Origin: Schmidtea nova
Taxonomy: Eukaryota
DNA: 64,000 nucleotides
Assembly: GCA_044892505.1 (NCBI GenBank)
Contig: CM097884.1
Span: forward strand, 128,960,001-129,024,000
Direction of reading: 5' to 3'
Part shown: positions 12,864 through 50,738 of the stretch, one piece after another
How the letters are laid out: each line of letters starts with the position of its first letter
Numbering within the stretch: position 1 is the first letter of the stretch
Made by a program: the position numbers and the translations under genes
The notes under the pieces: model-generated
Seen by the model: the letters and a program-made list of their open reading frames with translations, nothing else
Database searches by the model: none
Told to the model about the DNA's origin: nothing

Positions 12864-13573
12864 TATGTTGAATTTACTGAGTTGGCGTTTTTCTATTATT
12901 AAATCAAAAAATAACAAATTTTATTTTCACAAAAAATACATGAATTCTGACAAATGATTGCATTGTAACTTCATTCGAATAAATCTTTGGGTAAACTTTC
13001 CTTTGCACAATGATTAATTAATACGGTTTTAAATACAACTCAAATTTCACTACTCAAATTCTTTAAGTAAATAAAAATAATTTTTATCTTACTACTGCTA
13101 TTGTGTCTATGAAAATTGGGAATTTTGTTTTCAAAAATTATGAATTATGTCGTTATTTGATAAGTGAATGATTTGCATTTGTATCTCTTGGGACCTATTC
13201 TATTTAAAATTATTAGATTAGTTTAAAATATTTCATTCTCTACATTGTCCTACTCTTTTCACCGGAAAAAATATAAGTGCTGAGTTTTCTATGTTATACT
13301 CAACTTTATGTCCTATATAAATAATAAAACAAACGCTGGTTCGAGAAAAAGTTATTAAATAACAACATTTTTATATACTATTTGCACTATATATAATCTA
13401 TATTTACTTGACTTACTATAATCAAATGTTAAAATGTCAAATATTAGATAGGACTTATCGGGGTTGCAACTTTCATTGCCGATGCCCCTAAAATAAAAGT
13501 TAATAAGATGAAATATGCAATAAACATTTATTTAAAAGATATCTTCTTTAGCTGGTTAAAATTTTGCTTCTAG

Positions 13574-22744: not shown

Positions 22745-23148
22745 AATAATACACACATGTAGGAGTACACTTTTTAAATGACACAATCTCAAAAATATAT
22801 TTCTTCTGTCAAAGTAGTGTTGCTAGCAATGTATAACGAAGTAGCTCCCAAATAACTCATGGTAAAAGACGGGTTAATAATAGAATATAATAATAAAACT
22901 AAATAAAAAATATATATAGTTTTATTATTTAAAAAAAATATACGTGAGTTATTTAATTTACTTACTTTTTTATTTTACAATATTGATGATATTTTTCATT
23001 ATTCGGTGGCAGTGCAGAATTCGACCACAATTATTTAATTATTTTTTAATAATAAAATTTAATAATGTTTTTATGCAGTTGGGTTTTTAAAGCAATATTT
23101 GATAATGATACTTACATTTATTTATTATTTCATTATTATTACGATGTA

Positions 23149-23232
<84 letters not shown>

Positions 23233-23949
23233 AATGATAAATAATAATAATAAATAATCTGTTAAATAAAAATTGCAATTTATTCAACATTTATTCAATT
23301 TATTCAGCTGTCATCAGGCTTTAAACAAATTCAATAAATAAAATTTGATCCTATTTATACATTTATTAGTAATTACATTATCATATTTACATAATCCAAT
23401 AAAACTTTTATTAACCCTAGTAAAATTAATTAAAAACTCTCAAAATGCATGTAGATATTGGATTTTGTATGTTTATTTTAGGATTCAATGATTTTATCAT
23501 CGAAGCCTCACAATTCACACTTTCACAATAATACACACATGTAGGAGTACACTTTTTAAATGACACAATCTCAAAAATATATTTCTTCTGTCAAAGTAGT
23601 GTTGCTAGCAATATATAACGAAGTAGCTCCCAAATAACTCATGGTAAAAGACGGGTTAATAATAGAATATAATAATAAAACTAAATAAAAAATATATATA
23701 GTTTTATTATTTAAAAAAAATATCTGTGAGTTATTTAATTTACTTACTTTTTTATTTTACAATATTGATGATATTTTTCATTATTCGGTGGCAGTGCAGA
23801 ATTCGACCACAATTATTTAATTATTTTTTAATAATAAAATTTAATAATGTTTTTATGCAGTTGGGTTTTTAAAGCAATATTTGATAATGATACTTACATT
23901 TATTTATTATTTCATTATTATTACGATGTATTTGATGATGATGATGATC

Positions 23950-23998
<49 letters not shown>

Positions 23999-24293
23999 TA
24001 AATAATAATAATAAATAATCTGTTAAATAAAAATTGCAATTTATTCAACATTTATTCAATTTATTCAGCTGTCATCAAGCTTTAAACAAATTCAATAAAT
24101 AAAATTTGATCCTATTTATACATTTATTAGTAATTACATAATCATATTTACACAATCCAATAAAACTTTTATTAACCCTAGTAAAATTAATTAAAAACTC
24201 TCAAAATGCATGTAGATATTGGATTTTGTATGTTTATTTTAGGATTCAATGATTTTATCATCGAAGCCTCACAATTCACACTTTCACAATAAT
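22745..24293. repeat. Tandem duplication of a ~780-bp segment (copy 1 starts 22745, copy 2 starts 23527)
   Basis: Near-identical copies, each with a (GAT)n(AAT)n microsatellite and a minus-strand PLE family A 3' end; a few substitutions and different repeat lengths. Confidence 0.95.
23270..23532 (-). mobile_element. PLE family A 3' fragment with collapsed hammerhead
   Basis: Reverse complement matches the family A 3' end; ...AAAGC CUGAUGA CAGCU GAAU... with stem II deleted. Confidence 0.75.
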
Positions 24294-24359: not shown

Positions 24360-26336
24360 AAAAAAATTGAGAAAATTGTTTGGTGTGTGTGCACCTAATG
24401 TTAAGAATACTGTGGTGAATGTTACTGATGTGCCATTGACGAGAAATGAGGAGGGTATTTTAAAGTTTGATCCGAATCATGTTATTAGAAATAGAATTGA
24501 TAAATTTAATCTTTTCCCAGATTTTGTTTTTTACTTAATCTAAAAATATGAATATTTATTTGAATTATTTAAAACACTTACTGAATGTTAATGTCAATGA
24601 TTATTTAACTAAGAAGAAAAAGCTAAATATTAATGAGGAAGAAAATTATTAATATATGTAAATTTGATAAAGGTAATGGTTTATCGTTCTTAATCATGAT
24701 GATTATATAAAGTTAGAAAAGGTAGTTATTTCCACAATTTGAAAAGATTGTCAGTTTTCGAAAGAATGACAAATTACCACCTTAAAAATATGAAACCATA
24801 TTAATATCTCTACTTCATGACTTAATTTTTAATAACAATGTATATATATAAGAATATTGTTAATTCACTTTAGCCTCGTGGATCCCAGCCTGCTAAATTA
24901 TATGATCTTTCAAAAGTACATAAAAATAATTTTTTAAGTAGTAAATTTAAAGATTGGAAATGGTGACTTTATGGTTTTGTTTGATGTGGTTAACATTTAT
25001 AGAAATGTTTCTTTAATAGAAACAAATGATATTTGTAGCAATTTATGGAGTGTTAACAGTTCACTTTATAATATTATTGATATTGCTGCTTTTCGTAAAC
25101 TTTTGACATTTGGTTTTCTAATGTCCATTTTATCTGTGATAATCAAAGGTATAAACAGATTGATGGTGTTGTCATGGGCTCACCTTCAGCTACTACAATG
25201 GCTACTATTTTCATATCAAGTTTTAAAAAGAAATTTGCAAATTGTAGTGTGAATTAACCTTTAGTATACAAACATTACGTTGATGATATTTTTCTTGTAT
25301 TTAAGAATAAAGAACACGTTGAAACTTTTTTTATTAATTTATATAAAAATATTAAATTTACTTTTGAAAAGAAAATTAATTCTAAAATATCATTTATTGA
25401 TTTGTTGATTGAAAAGAAAGATAAACATTTTGAAACCGAAATTTATAGGAAAACAACAAATACAAGAAAGCTTTTGTGATTTAAATATAAACGAAATATG
25501 ACATTGTCGTCAATTTATTGTAAATTTATAAATTGTATTGATTAATTACTTAATTTGCTACAGAAAAACGGATATCCAAAATGTTTCTTGAAACGAATGG
25601 TGAGAGAAACTGCTAATAAATGTATCAATAAGCTGAATGTGATTGATTACAAAATTTCACCTAATATTGAGCCTTTTAATTCCGTTCATAGTGTTCTTTT
25701 GATTGAAACAGGTAATGTTGTAATGGGATTGAATGATGGTGTTGATAGTAATACTAATGAAATAAAAATAATTTGAAAGATAGCATTGGTTCTGTAATAG
25801 TTTTACCGTTTTCTGAGGGTTTTGTAAATTTTAGAAAATTTATCATAAAACATATTGAAAATACTAATTTTAAAATAATTTCTAAGTCTTACAAAGTTCG
25901 GACATGTTCAATAATAAATTTGTGACGCCATTTGGTCTATATTCTGATCTCGTATATCGTTTTACTTGTAATAGGGGTAATGCCACATACATTGGAGAGG
26001 CTGTCCATCATCTGTTTCAAGAGCATGTTAGAAAGAGCAGAAAGAGTAATATTATTGAGCATAATAAGATATGCAAGAAAATAATTAATATTTTCAATTT
26101 CAAAATATTGTCTAGTGGTTTTAAAAATTAATATGAACGTGTGAAATGCGAGGATTTGATGATAAAATTATTTAATTCTAAAGTAAACATACAAAATGCA
26201 ATATCTACATCCATTTTGAGAGTTTTTAATTTATTTTAATAGGGTTAATAAAAGTTTTATTGGATTATGCACATGTGATTATATATTCAATAATAAACGC
26301 ATAAATTAGATCAATTTCTTTATTGAATTTGTTTAA
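24360..26336 (+). mobile_element. Long decayed Penelope-like element (family A): RT plus GIY-YIG endonuclease
   Basis: PAKLYDLSKVHK, VLFDVVNIY, DGVVMGSP, YKHYVDDIF (25267-25293), NGYPKCF, VYRFTC...TYIGE; 3' UTR stops at a TTAA just before the position of the hammerhead. Confidence 0.9.
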
Positions 26337-26429
26337 CCCTTTCGTGTAATACGTATTCCCACTTTTGTTTTGCCCTAACAAGACAGATGGGAATGCCTTT
26401 TCACGATATTTTGGAAGTATAGATTCCAG

Positions 26430-29400
26430 TTTTTTACACGAGTGAACGTTTGTGACGGTACCATCCGTCCAAACACTTGTACATCTTGCATTCGGCGGCT
26501 TACAGAATACCTTTTCTCCTCTATCATAACGACTTAGAATTTCGTCATTCTTGATTTCCACTTCTTGCATATCCTTCCAGTCGTATGTAAATTGTTGTCA
26601 CGAAGGCGCTTCAAAGTCGCCACTGGAGCTCATGTTGATCTAGTATGTCAAGGGTGTCCCCTTTCGTACGGGCCGCCATTCTCTTCATAGTCCTGTGGTT
26701 CCTCTCAACAATTCCGTTTCCCGATGGTCGGTAAGCGCATCAAAAAATACGACCAACACCCACTTTGCACATAATTCCTCTAATTGACGAGATCTAAATG
26801 AATCACCATTATCCATGAGCAACTGGCACGCAGGTCCGCGTTCTCTGAATATATGTTCATAGATTCTAGTAAAGGTCACAGCATCCTCGTTACAAATCTC
26901 TCTCCATATTGCGAATCTACTCGGTCCGCAGTCGATACACGTCAAATAACGCTTATTCTGGTAGTGAGTCACGTCTAACGCCAATCTGGTTTAATTACAC
27001 TTCACCGCAAAATTTCCATGTTTCCATCTTACAAGTGTTGGATCTATCGTTCGACACTTAATACAGTTTGATATCACACCTTGTACCGCTCCATGAGATA
27101 CGTTAGGAAGCAACTTCCTTACGAAATACAGAGTTCGATCCACTCTGAAGTTATGCGCCTCGTGGCAATTCTTTATTCTGTCGGATATCTATATAGTAGA
27201 ACAACTTACTTGTTTAACCCATGTACGCCAAGCTTTTTTAACTCTAGTTAAAACGTCGGCCTTGTTTTTCTCGGTCGGGACAAACTCCACTGTTATCTTT
27301 AAGTTGTATGCCAGTTGGAGTTCGCGAACAATTTGTAGACGCCTAAGAATTAGCATCTCAGAAGATCCGTGAGTTTTTACTCGATGACTATCTGTCAGCA
27401 ATGACCCCAGCCAACTTTGGACCGTCGCAGAATCTGATTTCACGATTATCAACGATAGATCCCACTTAATCTCGAGATTAATTCCTTTAATTACAGCATT
27501 GAGTTCAGCCACGTTTATATGCGCTGCGTCGTCTGTCTTTTTCAGCCAAGCGGCATCCTCCACGATCTCTCCGTTGATTTCGAGACAAACTCCAAGATTG
27601 CTTGCATCACACCATACAACTCCATCTTTTGTCGGTGAAACATGTCAAACTCCACAAACTAAATCATCTTTCTTAACGAGTTCGATAATTTCAGCTATTA
27701 TCATGGAAGCATAATCTCCAATTGTATCTTCCCACGTTGAACTGGTACTCTGGCGCTTAACATAACTACATGCAATCTGCAACCATCCAGCAACTGGGTA
27801 GTGACCGACCAGATGACCGCACAAGAAAAACAGCTCCCTCCTTGTCATCGCTTCGCATGGTCTCATCTCCCTTAATTACGTTTCTTCTCCTCCAATATCT
27901 GCCTTCCGTGCATCTAGAGATCTGTAATCCCAAAACTTTAGAAGTATCGAATTTTTCCGGAGTTTTAACTGCTAGCCCGTATCTTGCCAGATGACGCACA
28001 ACTTTGTCTAATTGTACTTTTGACTTATTGACAATGATATCGTCAATATAACTGTCGGTTGCCTCTTTAATGTCTTTACGTAATCTTAACACTCTTCGCA
28101 CTATGGCAGACATTATTTTTAGTGCTACATTGAGGCCGAAACCCAATCTTGTCAAAGCATATACCTTTCCTAAAAACCTGACTTTTTGAAAATCCCACAG
28201 ATCGGGATTTACATGTATTTGTAGATAGACTTTTCTCAGATCTAGCATCTCTACTTTCTCCCCGAATCTTCAACAACGCCGTAAAGATTCGTCGCAAGCT
28301 TCACTCTGACCCGTGTGGCTCATTACATATTTATTCAGTTCGCGATAGTTGAGTATTGGTCGTATTTTTCCTTTGTTAGACTGATTAACTGCCATTAATG
28401 GTAGTATACCATCAGAGTTTCCTTCATAAGGCGTTAACCAACCGTTTCTAATCCATTCTGTGATTTCCGCGTCGAATCCATTGCTTAACTCTGGCTTAAT
28501 TCCATAGTTGGCACATATATTACCAAGTTCAGGAGGTTGATTTTTCCATTTCCAGCTCACTGTTCAATTGCCGGAAAGGAAATCGGCTTGAAAGTCTTCA
28601 TCTCTAATTTCCAGAGAATCGGTATGTCGTTCGCCTGCCCTCAAGAAATCGGACTTTCTCCCCACGGTGCTGGCCAAAAGAAGCGATACTCCTTGCCTTG
28701 ATATATTCACCCGCCGAGCATTCCTATAACATCCATTCCCAAAATTGCACCAAAATCTCTTGGAAGGTTTTCCATCACCAGACAGACCACTCGCAGACTT
28801 GTCTTTCTAATAACGATGTTAACCTCGACGGTTCCCAAACTCTTGGCCAATGATCTATCAGCCACCAGCACACTCTCGCTCTTCCCATACGGTCCGCTGT
28901 CCAACGAGGACAAAATAATAGATTGGGTACAACCTGAATCTACTAAAGCTTTGGAAGTCCTTCCGTTGACAGTTACAACGACAGTCTGCAGCGCCATTAT
29001 TGCTTTTCCGGAGTAAACACTGCGCACGTGTTACTCCAATAGTGTTTCCAGTCTGTTTCTTTGGGCACGATCGCGAGATGTGGGCTTTATCACCACATAT
29101 CCAACATTGTTTGTTTTTTCGGAAACATGTATCTTCATTGTGCCCTTTCTTTCCACAAAACGAATACATTTGGTCATTAGGATTGGGAATTCTTTTTTCT
29201 TTTACTCCCAGCATACAACTTTGCTGAGAAACTACAATACTCAACATAGTTCGAGCTATCTATACGACCGCATCCATTGCCATTGTTTCAATGGTCGGAA
29301 TAGCCTGTAGTGACAGTGATATAGAAGCGGGAAGTCCAGTAACGAACGAACATCTAATAATGGCATCATTGACTCCAGATAACTTACCCAGAAATGTTAG

Positions 29401-29860
29401 TTTGACCAGATAAACATCGACAGACTCGTTGCTCCATGATCGATTCTTAAATTTTTTAAAGGCAAGAAACATTGACATAGAGAATGCTCTCTTCATTGCT
29501 GCTTCGGTCTTGATGAAACTTCCTCTGACTTCATCGCTGAGATGTTGATACACCGCATATGCGTCTCCTTTCATCAGTATCGACAGAAACATCTCCAGGT
29601 TCTCAATCTTTTGCATGAGAGCTATCGTTCTTACTTGGGAAAACCATATCGTCACATCAACCGTTTCATCAAATTTTTGAAAATATTTAATAACTTCCAT
29701 GAATTTAGCCACGAAAGCTTGTAGTCGAACGCACAAGATCACTTTATTTAATAGATTCAAAAAATAAACAATCACGTTTTTAACCTTGTATTAAACAAAC
29801 ATAATAATCAATTTTAACATAATAATCAATTATCTTATATTTGTGCCGTTTATTCTAACA
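26430..29860 (-). mobile_element. Ty3/gypsy LTR retrotransposon, 3'-truncated, frameshifted
   Basis: gag from ATG 29700, two CCHC knuckles (CSFCGKKGHNEDTC, CWICGDKAHISRSC), protease ALVDSGC, RT (LDLRKVYLQ, RLGFGL, YIDD), RNase H (IKSDS), integrase HHCC and ALDVTH/LLMDNG/ER core. Confidence 0.93.
29720..29860 (-). repeat. Putative 141-bp 5' LTR (TGTTAG...CTACA)
   Basis: TG...CA termini, AATAAA near the end, 19 nt upstream of the gag ATG; no partner LTR in the window. Confidence 0.55.
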
Positions 29861-31207: not shown

Positions 31208-32002
31208 TTGGATCTGAGCATAAAAATCAACTCAGACACACCAGCATATGGGTTCTACAGAAAATCAGCCCGCAAAGAAATATTTATGCACCAAAGATCA
31301 GAACTTCCTCATCTGCAGAAGGTAAACGTCATTAGAAATGAGAGACAAAGGATAGCTAATCGATGCACAAAGAAAGAGGACAATTCAGTACAGCAAAGAA
31401 TATTTACAGAAGTCCTGCATCGTAATGGATACCATAATATTAACGAAATCAACAAAATAAAATTCAACCAGAAAAGGCAGAAAGACCTACAAAAGGAAAA
31501 GAAATATTTCTACCTCCGAATTCCTTTCATCAGTGACCGAATAAATTTCATGATCATCAAAGAACTTAATCTCACTGGCCTTCCGATTCGTTTGGCACAT
31601 AGATCTAAGACATTAAGGAGAGCTCTAGCTAACAACACGAGAAAGGAAAATACATGTAAAATGGAAAATTGCCAAACACCAAAGAAATTATGCTTTCGCA
31701 AGAACATAATCTATAGCATCATGTGTAATAAATGCAAAGAAATTTACATCGGAAGCACCCTTCGGACTTTGCATCAGAGAATTAAAGAACATCTTGATCC
31801 TGGTGGAAAGTCATCTGTATATAGACATCTCCACCAATGTCATACAGAAAATAAGGAAAAATTAATATCAGTGAGAATATTGACAAATGAAAACGACGAG
31901 AAAAATCTCAGACTTAAAGAAGCTATTCTCATTAGAGACAAACACCGAAAAATTAACTCTAAAGAGGAAGTAAGCGAAATCGCCCACTTGTTATCTTGTT
32001 AA
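31208..32002 (+). CDS. PLE ORF fragment: RT thumb, Cys-rich linker, GIY-YIG endonuclease
   Basis: LLDLSI...FYRK...HLQKVNVIRNE...NGY...LRIPFI...CKMENC...C...NIIYSIMCNKCKEIYIGSTLRTLHQRIKEH...RLKEAILI...INSKEE; 5'-truncated, no real start codon. Confidence 0.88.
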   Translation: MDLSIKINSDTPAYGFYRKSARKEIFMHQRSELPHLQKVNVIRNERQRIANRCTKKEDNSVQQRIFTEVLHRNGYHNINEINKIKFNQKRQKDLQKEKKYFYLRIPFISDRINFMIIKELNLTGLPIRLAHRSKTLRRALANNTRKENTCKMENCQTPKKLCFRKNIIYSIMCNKCKEIYIGSTLRTLHQRIKEHLDPGGKSSVYRHLHQCHTENKEKLISVRILTNENDEKNLRLKEAILIRDKHRKINSKEEVSEIAHLLSC

Positions 32003-32436
32003 AAAATGTGGTTCTACGAAGACGAAAGTATAAAAGTAAAAGGAAGATATAAAAAAAGAAGAAAGAAAAGTGATAGTACAGAGAATTTATGGACATTTCA
32101 AAGAGATATAATTAAATTTTAAAATTCAAAAAATAAAATTCAAATATAAAAGGTTGGAAAATTAAAAGTGTAGAATAGAGACAATGGAAAAATTTAAAAA
32201 TTTTTAATTTTTAAAAAAAGGATAAATTTATTTATTCTGAAAAAAATTTAGAAAAAATTTTTAATAATTTTTAGAGTATTTGTTTTATATTTTTAAATTT
32301 TTAACAAAAAACATTTAAAAACAATTAAGAATTTAAAAAATTTATATTAATCAGATTAACATCCAATGAAAAGGAAGAGAAATCACGAAAAAAGAAACAA
32401 CAGAATGAATGAAGATACCAGTTATTTGCCGAATTA

Positions 32437-32475
32437 GAGATTGACGAGGATTATTTGATAATCGAAAATTTTCTC
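32437..32475 (+). ncRNA. Minimal type I hammerhead, U3-G8 variant (family B)
   Basis: GAGA UUGACGA G GAUUAU UUG AUAAUC GAAA AU UU^ UCUC: 4-bp stem I, 6-bp stem II, palindromic stem III AAUU. Confidence 0.75.
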
Positions 32476-32649
32476 ACTTAATAAAATTATTTTTGCAGTN
32501 NNNNNNNNNNNNNNNNNNNNNNNNNNNNNNNNNNNNNNNNNNNNNNNNNNNNNNNNNNNNNNNNNNNNNNNNNNNNNNNNNNNNNNNNNNNNNNNNNNNN
32601 NNNNNNNNNNNNNNNNNNNNNNNNNNNNNNNNNNNNNNNNNNNNNNNNN

Positions 32650-32853
32650 ACTATAGATCAAAATTTTTTTTTTATAAACAATAACACAATATTTCGGCAC
32701 AGCCTTTATCAAGTGTGTATATACACACTTGATAAAGGCTGTGCCGAAATATTGTGTTATTGTTTATAAAAAAAAATTTTGATCTATAGTCATTATGAGA
32801 ATTATTGATAATAATAATAAAAAAAGATCAAAGGTGAAAAAAGATAATTATGA

Positions 32854-32886
<33 letters not shown>

Positions 32887-33088
32887 CATAATTATCTTTT
32901 TTCACCTTTGATCTTTTTTATTATTATTATCAATAATTCTCATAATGACTATAGATCAAAATTTTTTTTTATAAACAATAACACAATATTTCGGCACAGC
33001 CTTTATCAAGTGAAATACACACTTGATAAAGGCTGTGCCGAAATATTGTGTTATTGTTTATAAAAAAAAATTTTGATCTATAGTCATT
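32650..33088. repeat. Alternating inverted array of the family D hammerhead module (-,+,-,+), flanked by gaps
   Basis: Head-to-head centres at 32720/32721 and ~33012; tail-to-tail join via ~(ATT)10 at ~32855-32885. Confidence 0.95.
32725..32757 (+). ncRNA. Minimal type I hammerhead, U3-A8 variant (family D); further copies at 33019-33051 (+), 32684-32716 (-), 32981-33012 (-)
   Basis: ACAC UUGAUAA A GGC UGU GCC GAAA UA UU^ GUGU: 4-bp stem I, 3-bp GC stem II, palindromic stem III AUAU. Confidence 0.75.
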
Positions 33089-49331: not shown

Positions 49332-49688
49332 AATAAGCATTTGCTGCAAAAACAATTTTATTAAGGGAGAAAATTTTCGATATAAAATAGTCTTCGTCAA
49401 TCTTTAATTCGGCAAATAACTGGTATCTTCATTTTGCTGTTTCTTTCTCGTGAATTATCTTCCTTTTCATTGGATGTTAATCTGATTATTATAAATTTAA
49501 AATTGTTTTCTGAATTTTTTTTATTAAAAATTTTAAATATAAAATTCAAACTCTAAAATTTTAAAAATTTCTAAAATTTTTTTTTTCGAATAAATAATTT
49601 TATCCTTTTTTAAAATTTAAAATTTTTTTTCAGTTTATTGTCTGTATTTTACATTTAAATTTTCCAAACCTTTATATTTGAATTTTTT
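49332..49688 (-). mobile_element. PLE family B 3' UTR with U3-G8 hammerhead (49367-49404)
   Basis: Reverse complement aligns by eye with ~32130-32499; HHR AAGA UUGACGA A GACUAUUUUAUAUC GAAA AU UU UCUC. Confidence 0.85.
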
Positions 49689-50621
49689 NNNNNNNNNNNN
49701 NNNNNNNNNNNNNNNNNNNNNNNNNNNNNNNNNNNNNNNNNNNNNNNNNNNNNNNNNNNNNNNNNNNNNNNNNNNNNNNNNNNNNNNNNNNNNNNNNNNN
49801 NNNNNNNNNNNNNNNNNNNNNNNNNNNNNNNNNNNNNNNNNNNNNNNNNNNNNNNNNNNNNNNNNNNNNNNNNNNNNNNNNNNNNNNNNNNNNNNNNNNN
49901 NNNNNNNNNNNNNNNNNNNNNNNNNNNNNNNNNNNNNNNNNNNNNNNNNNNNNNNNNNNNNNNNNNNNNNNNNNNNNNNNNNNNNNNNNNNNNNNNNNNN
50001 NNNNNNNNNNNNNNNNNNNNNNNNNNNNNNNNNNNNNNNNNNNNNNNNNNNNNNNNNNNNNNNNNNNNNNNNNNNNNNNNNNNNNNNNNNNNNNNNNNNN
50101 NNNNNNNNNNNNNNNNNNNNNNNNNNNNNNNNNNNNNNNNNNNNNNNNNNNNNNNNNNNNNNNNNNNNNNNNNNNNNNNNNNNNNNNNNNNNNNNNNNNN
50201 NNNNNNNNNNNNNNNNNNNNNNNNNNNNNNNNNNNNNNNNNNNNNNNNNNNNNNNNNNNNNNNNNNNNNNNNNNNNNNNNNNNNNNNNNNNNNNNNNNNN
50301 NNNNNNNNNNNNNNNNNNNNNNNNNNNNNNNNNNNNNNNNNNNNNNNNNNNNNNNNNNNNNNNNNNNNNNNNNNNNNNNNNNNNNNNNNNNNNNNNNNNN
50401 NNNNNNNNNNNNNNNNNNNNNNNNNNNNNNNNNNNNNNNNNNNNNNNNNNNNNNNNNNNNNTAGCTTCCGACACTTTTTACATAAAAAAATACAAACCGT
50501 TCATCAACATTCAATTTGCACCAAAAAATTAAAATAAATTTTTTTTCATCTAATAAAATCATTTTAAAATATTAAAAAAATAATTAAGGTCACCATTTAG
50601 GATTAAGTTAATATAACGATA

Positions 50622-50738
50622 GAAATACACACTTGATAAAGGCTGTGCCGAAATATTGTGTTATTGTTTATAAAAAATTTTTTGATCTATAGTCATCATT
50701 ATGAGAATTATTGATAATAATAATAAAAAAAGATCAAA
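50622..50738 (+). repeat. Single (non-palindromic) family D module
   Basis: GAAATACACACTTGATAAAGGCTGTGCCGAAATATTGTG...ATGAGAATTATTGAT; runs into a gap. Confidence 0.92.

Follow-up and report, generated by a model that had tools for sequence, protein, structure and literature searches.

Penelope-like elements (PLEs) carry minimal hammerhead ribozymes, which are recognised by a short helix I, a nucleotide inserted between positions 9 and 10.1, a G10.1-C11.1 pair and a palindromic 15.2-16.2 stretch, such that helix III forms only in a dimer; a covariation of the core to U3-A8 has been described in Schistosoma (~1,300 copies), and pairs of minimal hammerheads on opposite strands, 100-700 bp apart, were noted as early as 2014 (PMC4209133). 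The published minimal hammerheads cleave poorly in vitro (PMC4209133), and one of them needed the PLE protein for cleavage (PMC11167929). PLE insertions have a characteristic layout, in which an inverted, 5'-truncated copy lies adjacent at the 5' end, and they are biased towards microsatellites; PLE structures are also known to upset short-read assemblies (PMC8557442). Further, purified PLE protein cleaves and extends both target strands (PMC11167929). Two other systems are relevant here: the metazoan non-LTR retrozymes, which are thought to derive from the pLTRs of PLEs (PMC7229834; 10.64898/2026.07.22.740005), and rearranged Penelope copies with inverted repeats, which yield siRNAs mapping exactly to the inverted parts (PMC3681739).

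The locus described here lies in a 64-kb stretch of Schmidtea nova DNA with a GC content of 26.8% (the window; all positions are those of the window). Positions 32650-33088 form an island, i.e. a 439-bp contig with a run of N at each side, in which a ~135-bp module, referred to as family D, occurs four times in the order -,+,-,+. Arm 1 (32650-32720, minus strand; row p1L of alignment A1, which comprises all eleven family D arms of the window) has its 5' end at 32720, and its outer part is lost in the gap. Arm 2 (32721-32854, plus strand; row p1R) is full length at 134 nt, arm 3 (32885-33012, minus strand; row p2L) is ~4 nt short at its 5' end, and arm 4 (33013-33088, plus strand; row p2R) starts 2 nt further 5' than arm 2 and loses its outer part in the second gap. 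The first head-to-head centre, at 32720/32721, is a perfect palindrome; at the second, ~33013, the left arm is ~4 nt short and two A residues stand at the junction. The middle arms meet 3' to 3' via an (ATT)10 microsatellite at 32855-32884, which is the probable insertion target. When compared with its own reverse complement, the 439-bp contig displays 95% identity over 440 nt. We note that the four-arm order is read from this single contig, both ends of which fall at one and the same position of the module. The initial annotation had described a ~135-bp module alternating -,+,-,+, joined head-to-head and tail-to-tail via (ATT)n, and the four arms were recovered as described; its predicted cleavage sites at 32753 and 33047 (plus strand) and 32688 and 32985 (minus strand), 294 and 297 nt apart, respectively, agree in both coordinates and arithmetic. 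As set out below, we consider it likely that the array consists of two neighbouring twin insertions of a very abundant, ~135-bp non-autonomous Penelope-type retroelement in an (ATT)n microsatellite.

The hammerhead motif of family D, as represented by 32725-32757, is 33 nt long and, read 5' to 3', consists of a 4-nt helix I strand, UUGAUAA, an extra A, a 3-bp helix II closed by a 3-nt loop, GAA, AUAU, a U and the complementary 4-nt helix I strand. Helix I is formed by ACAC pairing with GUGU (4 bp) and is open, giving the motif a type I topology. The conserved core is present (U4 G5 A6, A9, G12 A13 A14, A15.1/U16.1, with U as H17), and positions 3 and 8 are U3-A8 in every family D copy. The extra A lies between positions 9 and 10.1 and is followed by GGC/GCC, including the G10.1-C11.1 pair, so helix II has 3 bp and a UGU loop compared with 4-6 bp in two further hammerhead families of the window (families A and C, described below). 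Helix III is the palindromic AUAU, and the motif could thus act only as a dimer. Four motifs were located in the array: 32684-32716 on the minus strand (U3-A8 core; predicted site after 32688; descriptor and pattern match), 32725-32757 on the plus strand (predicted site after 32753; descriptor match), 33019-33051 on the plus strand (predicted site after 33047; descriptor match), and 32982-33012 on the minus strand (predicted site after 32985), in which helix I is cut to 3 bp and which is found with the loose descriptor only. Helix I is also limited to 3 bp in both copies at 46.1 kb. Otherwise, the motif is almost invariant within the window, and the 29-nt core of the module occurs 10 times at two or fewer mismatches, compared with 0 expected occurrences, at 32.7, 33.0, 44.07, 46.15, 48.98 and 50.63 kb. 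Folded alone, the motif at 32725-32757 reaches -6.5 kcal/mol (z -0.31).

The descriptor was built from the traits of PLE minimal hammerheads in PMC4209133; its strict form requires 4 bp in helix I and its loose form 3 bp. In the window, the strict descriptor matched family D and one unrelated motif at 32437-32475, and it gave no match in 300 dinucleotide-preserving shuffles of the window. The loose descriptor, for which the chance expectation is 0.007 matches per shuffled window, added a third family (C) at 12623-12661 and 12823-12861. Families C, A and D have different stems and differ in their 3/8 core pair, which is C3-G8, U3.G8 and U3-A8, respectively. Because all of the listed traits are present, and because the descriptor matches three unrelated families against an expectation of 0.007, we conclude that, judged by its sequence, the family D motif is a true member of the published PLE minimal hammerhead class and not a chance resemblance. 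This bears out the earlier parsing of each module as a minimal type I hammerhead and, at the level of prediction, the proposal that its palindromic stem III would restrict cleavage to dimers. The hammerhead models of Rfam did not match, either in the whole window at the gathering score or in the array and the isolated motif at E values up to 10; for the array, Rfam returned only sub-threshold generic hairpin (miRNA precursor) matches, which the palindrome explains. As a control, the family C motif with its canonical C3-G8 core was likewise unmatched by Rfam, and the negative result is therefore uninformative, as the models are blind to such an architecture. A metagenome scan with a degenerate 26-nt pattern returned five contigs and no further family D copies. 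Four of the five lie in unrelated DNA that is seemingly coding and richer in GC, and were rejected as coincidental. The fifth (L003:487-512, in a 1.2-kb contig of 24% GC) has a U3-A8 core, an extra base, a GGC/GCC helix II and GAAAUAUU, with an unmatched helix I; this could be a chance match, or a relative from some other AT-rich organism.

The surroundings of the array are rich in transposon remnants, and the PLE pieces among them gather at (ATT)n tracts. The ORF at 31208-32002 (plus strand) is the C-terminal ORF of a PLE with a GIY-YIG endonuclease domain (Pfam GIY-YIG, 6.9e-7, 29.9 bits compared with a cut-off of 22.6). It has two Cys residues inside the GIY...YIG core followed by histidines, a pattern characteristic of canonical PLE endonucleases (PMC8557442). 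Its nearest ESM Atlas clusters combine HTH_animal and GIY-YIG, one being named a reverse-transcriptase fragment; these clusters are arthropod and cnidarian PLE fragments. This ORF ends ~650 bp upstream of the array, with a 150-N gap in between, and its 3' region carries family A: a minimal hammerhead at 32437-32475 (plus strand), ~435 nt after the ORF stop. Its core has a U3.G8 wobble, its helix II comprises 6 bp and its helix III is AAUU. Inverted copies of the flank 32135-32498 are present at 49686-49344 and 41993-41931, and two older family A copies fall outside the descriptor: at 41950-41990, C replaces G5, and at 49344-49400, helix II is disrupted. A second PLE-endonuclease-like ORF (42249-42539, minus strand) is 32% identical to the first (tblastn 2e-7) and is followed by (ATT)10 at 41995-42024 and then by the 5'-truncated family A copy with the mutated G5; this region appears to be a further case of PLE pieces stacked at a microsatellite. 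It is plausible that family D is mobilised by a PLE, as suggested by its adjacency to the GIY-YIG ORF across the 150-N gap. The nearby endonuclease ORF is in keeping with the PLE link proposed in the initial annotation, but its 3' region holds a different hammerhead family and the family D parent is not in the window. Family C forms a 329-bp palindrome (95%) at 12578-12906, in gap-free sequence, with two arms arranged 5' to 5' around ~20 nt of filler; in each arm, a minimal hammerhead with the canonical C3-G8 core is located ~80 nt away from the centre, and the arms differ by one base that lengthens helix II in one of them.

Several other repeats were recorded in the window. The ORF at 39399-40253 (plus strand) encodes an IS1595/ISXO2-like DDE transposase domain (Pfam 6.3e-11) and is probably a Merlin-type DNA transposon. 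Broken ORFs at 26265-29775 (minus strand) give weak RVT_1 and RVT_3 (RNase H-like) matches and represent a decayed retrotransposon of a non-PLE type. A ~785-bp tandem duplication (96%) at 22745-24293 contains an (ATA)n tract in each copy, and part of each copy recurs near PLE remnants at 42.1, 43.7 and 26.2 kb. Finally, a 22-nt satellite is present as two arrays in opposite orientation, ~1.2 kb apart, at 1181-1314 and 2551-2802.

Outside the array, family D copies were found, with gaps beside them, at the four further loci that the initial annotation had listed (44.0, 46.1, 48.9 and 50.6 kb); all family D loci in the window adjoin runs of N. Three of these loci are head-to-head pairs. The pair at 44002-44124 (rows p3L and p3R) joins two different subfamilies at 44.06 kb, and its left arm is truncated 12 nt into the motif. 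In the pair at 46106-46340 (rows p4L and p4R), private variants occur in both arms; 8 nt are missing from the left arm by truncation, and the right one has (ATT)n at its end. The pair at 48895-49108 (rows p5L and p5R) has a near-perfect junction with one extra A and (AAT)n on its left. The fourth locus, 50610-50738 (plus strand), is a single copy in which the sequence runs on upstream of the usual 5' end, as in a longer parent form. When all eleven arms were aligned (A1), each pair was seen to contain one full-length arm, starting ATACACAC with 0-2 extra A, and a partner arm that falls short by 0, 4, 8 or 12 nt, depending on the pair. The extra A residues correspond to the letters of the longer 50.6-kb copy. 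The 5' ends of family D cluster within 3 nt, just upstream of helix I, and random 5' truncation leaves this clustering unexplained. Private variants are common to both arms of the pair at 46.1 kb and to both arms of the pair at 49.0 kb, which is the expectation if both arms were copied from one template. The five head-to-head junctions (32720/21, 33013, 44062, 46167 and 49000) all differ. Microsatellites of (ATT)n or (AAT)n are present at 32855-32884, ~46313-46335, 48841-48922 and 41995-42024, and the pairs at 46.1 and 48.9 kb, which lie inside a 3-kb contig, have (ATT)n or (AAT)n on their outside. Head-to-tail family D pairs do not occur in the window, where neighbouring arms are always opposite, and there is no full-length family D parent in the window either; as the upstream part of the extended copy (50462-50625) gave no significant match in the rest of the window, the parent element was not found there. 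We also observed, adjoining the (AAT)n that flanks the 48.9-kb pair, a perfect 41-nt tandem duplication (1.9 copies) at 48776-48854, which may be a PLE tail or target duplication, or microsatellite-adjacent slippage.

We used contigs built independently from the reads of two samples of the same organism to check the array; this check covers the two head-to-head junctions. The contigs of the two samples contain 93% of the sampled words. Among the runs listed as containing the stretch, none is recorded as RNA, and its k-mers were also found in soil metagenome runs. In total, 5,370 and 7,249 contig pieces from the two samples matched the array, indicating that family D is very abundant. Both inner junctions are spanned by read contigs from both samples, which extend more than 31 nt beyond the junction in either direction, and we conclude that the inverted junctions exist in the reads. 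Further, more than 100 contigs per run begin at 33011-33014, i.e. at the module 5' end, with unrelated sequence upstream, indicating that single copies sharing this 5' end are frequent. Some read contigs carry the upstream letters of the 50.6-kb copy, and a longer form of family D thus exists. A further class, known from the read contigs only, keeps the hammerhead and diverges right after it, and the left arm at 44.0 kb diverges likewise. Among the contig pieces listed, none covers the entire 32650-33088 interval, and no contig class beginning at the cleavage site was present among the best-supported loose ends listed.

Family D at this locus displays the layout of inverted PLE insertions: copies arranged 5' to 5', variable 5' truncation, 3' ends facing outward and a microsatellite at the site. 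In each copy, the 5' end bears a PLE-type minimal hammerhead motif and the 3' end leads into (ATT)n, and we infer that twins arise at integration, when the PLE machinery would prime reverse transcription on both strands of the cut (ATT)n target. Two cDNAs would then grow inward from their 3' ends and become linked through their 5' ends, one arm losing a small and variable number of nucleotides, and two such events in one microsatellite would produce the order -,+,-,+. The cleavage and extension of both strands by PLE protein provides a direct route to two inward cDNAs joined in this way. That the palindromes were made at insertion, and not copied as units, is indicated by the inner junctions, which differ by locus, and by the pair that joins two subfamilies; twin insertion would be expected to form a fresh junction every time and to lose nucleotides at the centre, whereas copying of a palindrome through a hairpin RNA would put the truncations at the outer end and leave the centres alike. 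The ribozyme motifs on both strands would, on this account, be a by-product of insertion geometry, and the hammerheads of a read-through transcript would be hidden within long perfect hairpins, making the siRNA pathway a more likely destination than self-cleavage.

The alternative that survives best, although we regard it as unlikely, is that the -,+,-,+ order is a product of assembly, in which a 439-bp contig of a family with thousands of copies, running through the repeat graph, was dropped between gaps and the real locus may contain one pair or none. The N on both flanks, the identical module position at both contig ends and the occurrence of all family D loci in short contigs beside gaps agree with such an origin, as does the tendency of PLE structures to break short-read assemblies (PMC8557442), and the (ATT)n joint lies outside the coverage of the read contigs. 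However, the two inner junctions are unlike each other, both are bridged by independent contigs from two samples, and a 3-kb contig contains further pairs with (ATT)n or (AAT)n on the outside, at 46.1 and 48.9 kb.

The initial annotation had favoured an ambisense, viroid-like retrozyme, in which same-sense hammerheads dimerise and cut out a ~295-nt self-complementary RNA that circularises and is copied by a PLE reverse transcriptase. This reading draws on the 294- and 297-nt spacing of same-sense motifs on both strands, on the palindromic helix III, which could pair in a dimer, and on the perfect junction with high k-mer depth in the reads, but we consider it very improbable for several reasons. 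First, in a read-through transcript of either strand, each hammerhead is immediately preceded by its own perfect complement. For the junction region (74 nt), a 35-bp hairpin of -60.3 kcal/mol is predicted, compared with -12.2 kcal/mol for the best structure that retains helices I and II, and the 294-nt unit folds into two perfect hairpins (-182.4 kcal/mol, z -32), whereas dimerisation of two free motifs yields only -18.9 kcal/mol. Because the antisense precedes each hammerhead, and given the energies of the junction region, the active hammerhead fold is predicted to be disfavoured both at equilibrium and kinetically. A sense-only RNA running from the junction outward would leave the motif free, but would contain only one motif. 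Second, the junctions vary by locus and one pair is heterologous, implying that the palindrome is not a copied unit, and the truncations are found at the inner junction and not at the outer ends, where a hairpin-RNA template would place them. Third, contigs starting at the cleavage site did not form a class among the best-supported loose ends listed. Fourth, family D in the window lacks both features by which retrozymes are defined (PMC7229834), direct tandem repeats and canonical hammerheads with loop-loop contacts, and a retrozyme identity for the array was rejected on this ground. Hairpin energies, heterogeneous junctions, the PLE insertion layout and the retrozyme definition speak against the ~295-nt circle of the earlier proposal. 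Its caveat, namely that double-stranded RNA sequesters the hammerhead and turns the locus into a source of siRNA, appears to be the better reading: read-through RNA would likely end as dsRNA and siRNA, considering that the antisense hairpins bury the hammerhead and that Penelope siRNAs provide a precedent (PMC3681739).

A related idea, to which we give even less credence, is that the head-to-head dimer is itself the functional unit, in that proteins of the host or of a PLE open the hairpin and a ~295-nt RNA of either polarity is excised, circularised and copied into (ATT)n; if true, this unit would be an inverted-repeat (ambisense) form of the animal retrozyme. The array is probably not a new ribozyme circle working on both strands. 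Its two polarities are the same sequence mirrored by an inverted DNA repeat, and a viroid-like RNA is without support. Just as improbable is a foldback or MITE-like DNA transposon resembling a hammerhead by chance, since the near-perfect, dispersed and AT-rich palindromes and the sub-threshold generic hairpin (miRNA-precursor) matches in Rfam, which are all compatible with it, are set against a motif far from chance that is shared by two further unrelated families with different stems, common single non-palindromic copies, a centre that varies where the ends do not, outer ends that are microsatellite and not inverted termini with duplications, and PLE ORFs nearby.

Twin insertion of a short Penelope-type element, which we prefer, has several consequences. 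The hammerheads on both strands of the palindrome would follow automatically from the PLE mode of insertion and, alone, are no evidence for viroid-like RNA; the finding thus mainly removes a tempting false lead. At 33 nt, with a U3-A8 core and a 3-bp helix II, the motif is among the smallest natural hammerhead candidates and offers a simple substrate with which to study the limits of the minimal core and the need for PLE protein in cleavage. Since full-length family D twins are very frequent, the genome would be a good natural record of two-strand PLE priming, and the family D hairpin loci would allow a test of siRNA feedback on the element. What may be new here is the very compact motif, the sharply clustered 5' end upstream of helix I and the high share of full-length twins.

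Overall, family D most resembles the PLE minimal hammerheads of Cervera and De la Pena (2014, PMC4209133), with which it shares the type I topology, a helix III that consists of the palindrome only, a 4-bp helix I, the extra base, the G10.1-C11.1 pair and the U3-A8 core, as well as massive dispersed copies, mostly single or truncated, and opposite-strand pairs. It differs from them in helix II, which has 6-8 bp in the published examples and 3 bp with a triloop here (33 nt in all), and in the placement of the motif, which occupies the extreme 5' end of its ~135-bp unit, with (ATT)n at the other end. Complex PLE insertions (Craig et al. 2021, PMC8557442; Frangieh et al. 2024, PMC11167929) likewise have an inverted 5'-truncated copy joined at the 5' end, with 3' ends facing the target, a microsatellite bias and nesting beside older PLE copies; unlike in those cases, both arms of family D are short and non-autonomous and often both full length, resulting in perfect palindromes, and no 30-40 bp tail was confidently identified. 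The metazoan non-LTR retrozymes (Cervera and De la Pena 2020, PMC7229834; Li et al. 2026 preprint, 10.64898/2026.07.22.740005) are also short, AT-rich, non-autonomous repeats with type I hammerheads. However, theirs are direct head-to-tail tandem repeats of 150-450 bp, whereas the family D arms are inverted; their hammerheads are canonical with loop 1-loop 2 contacts, whereas that of family D is minimal with an open 4-bp helix I; and they have been seen as circRNAs, whereas family D is known here from DNA. The rearranged Penelope copies of Drosophila (PMC3681739) resemble family D in being inverted PLE copies predicted to form dsRNA, and differ in that they are full Penelope elements with small-RNA data, in contrast to the genomic record on which the present description of family D is based.
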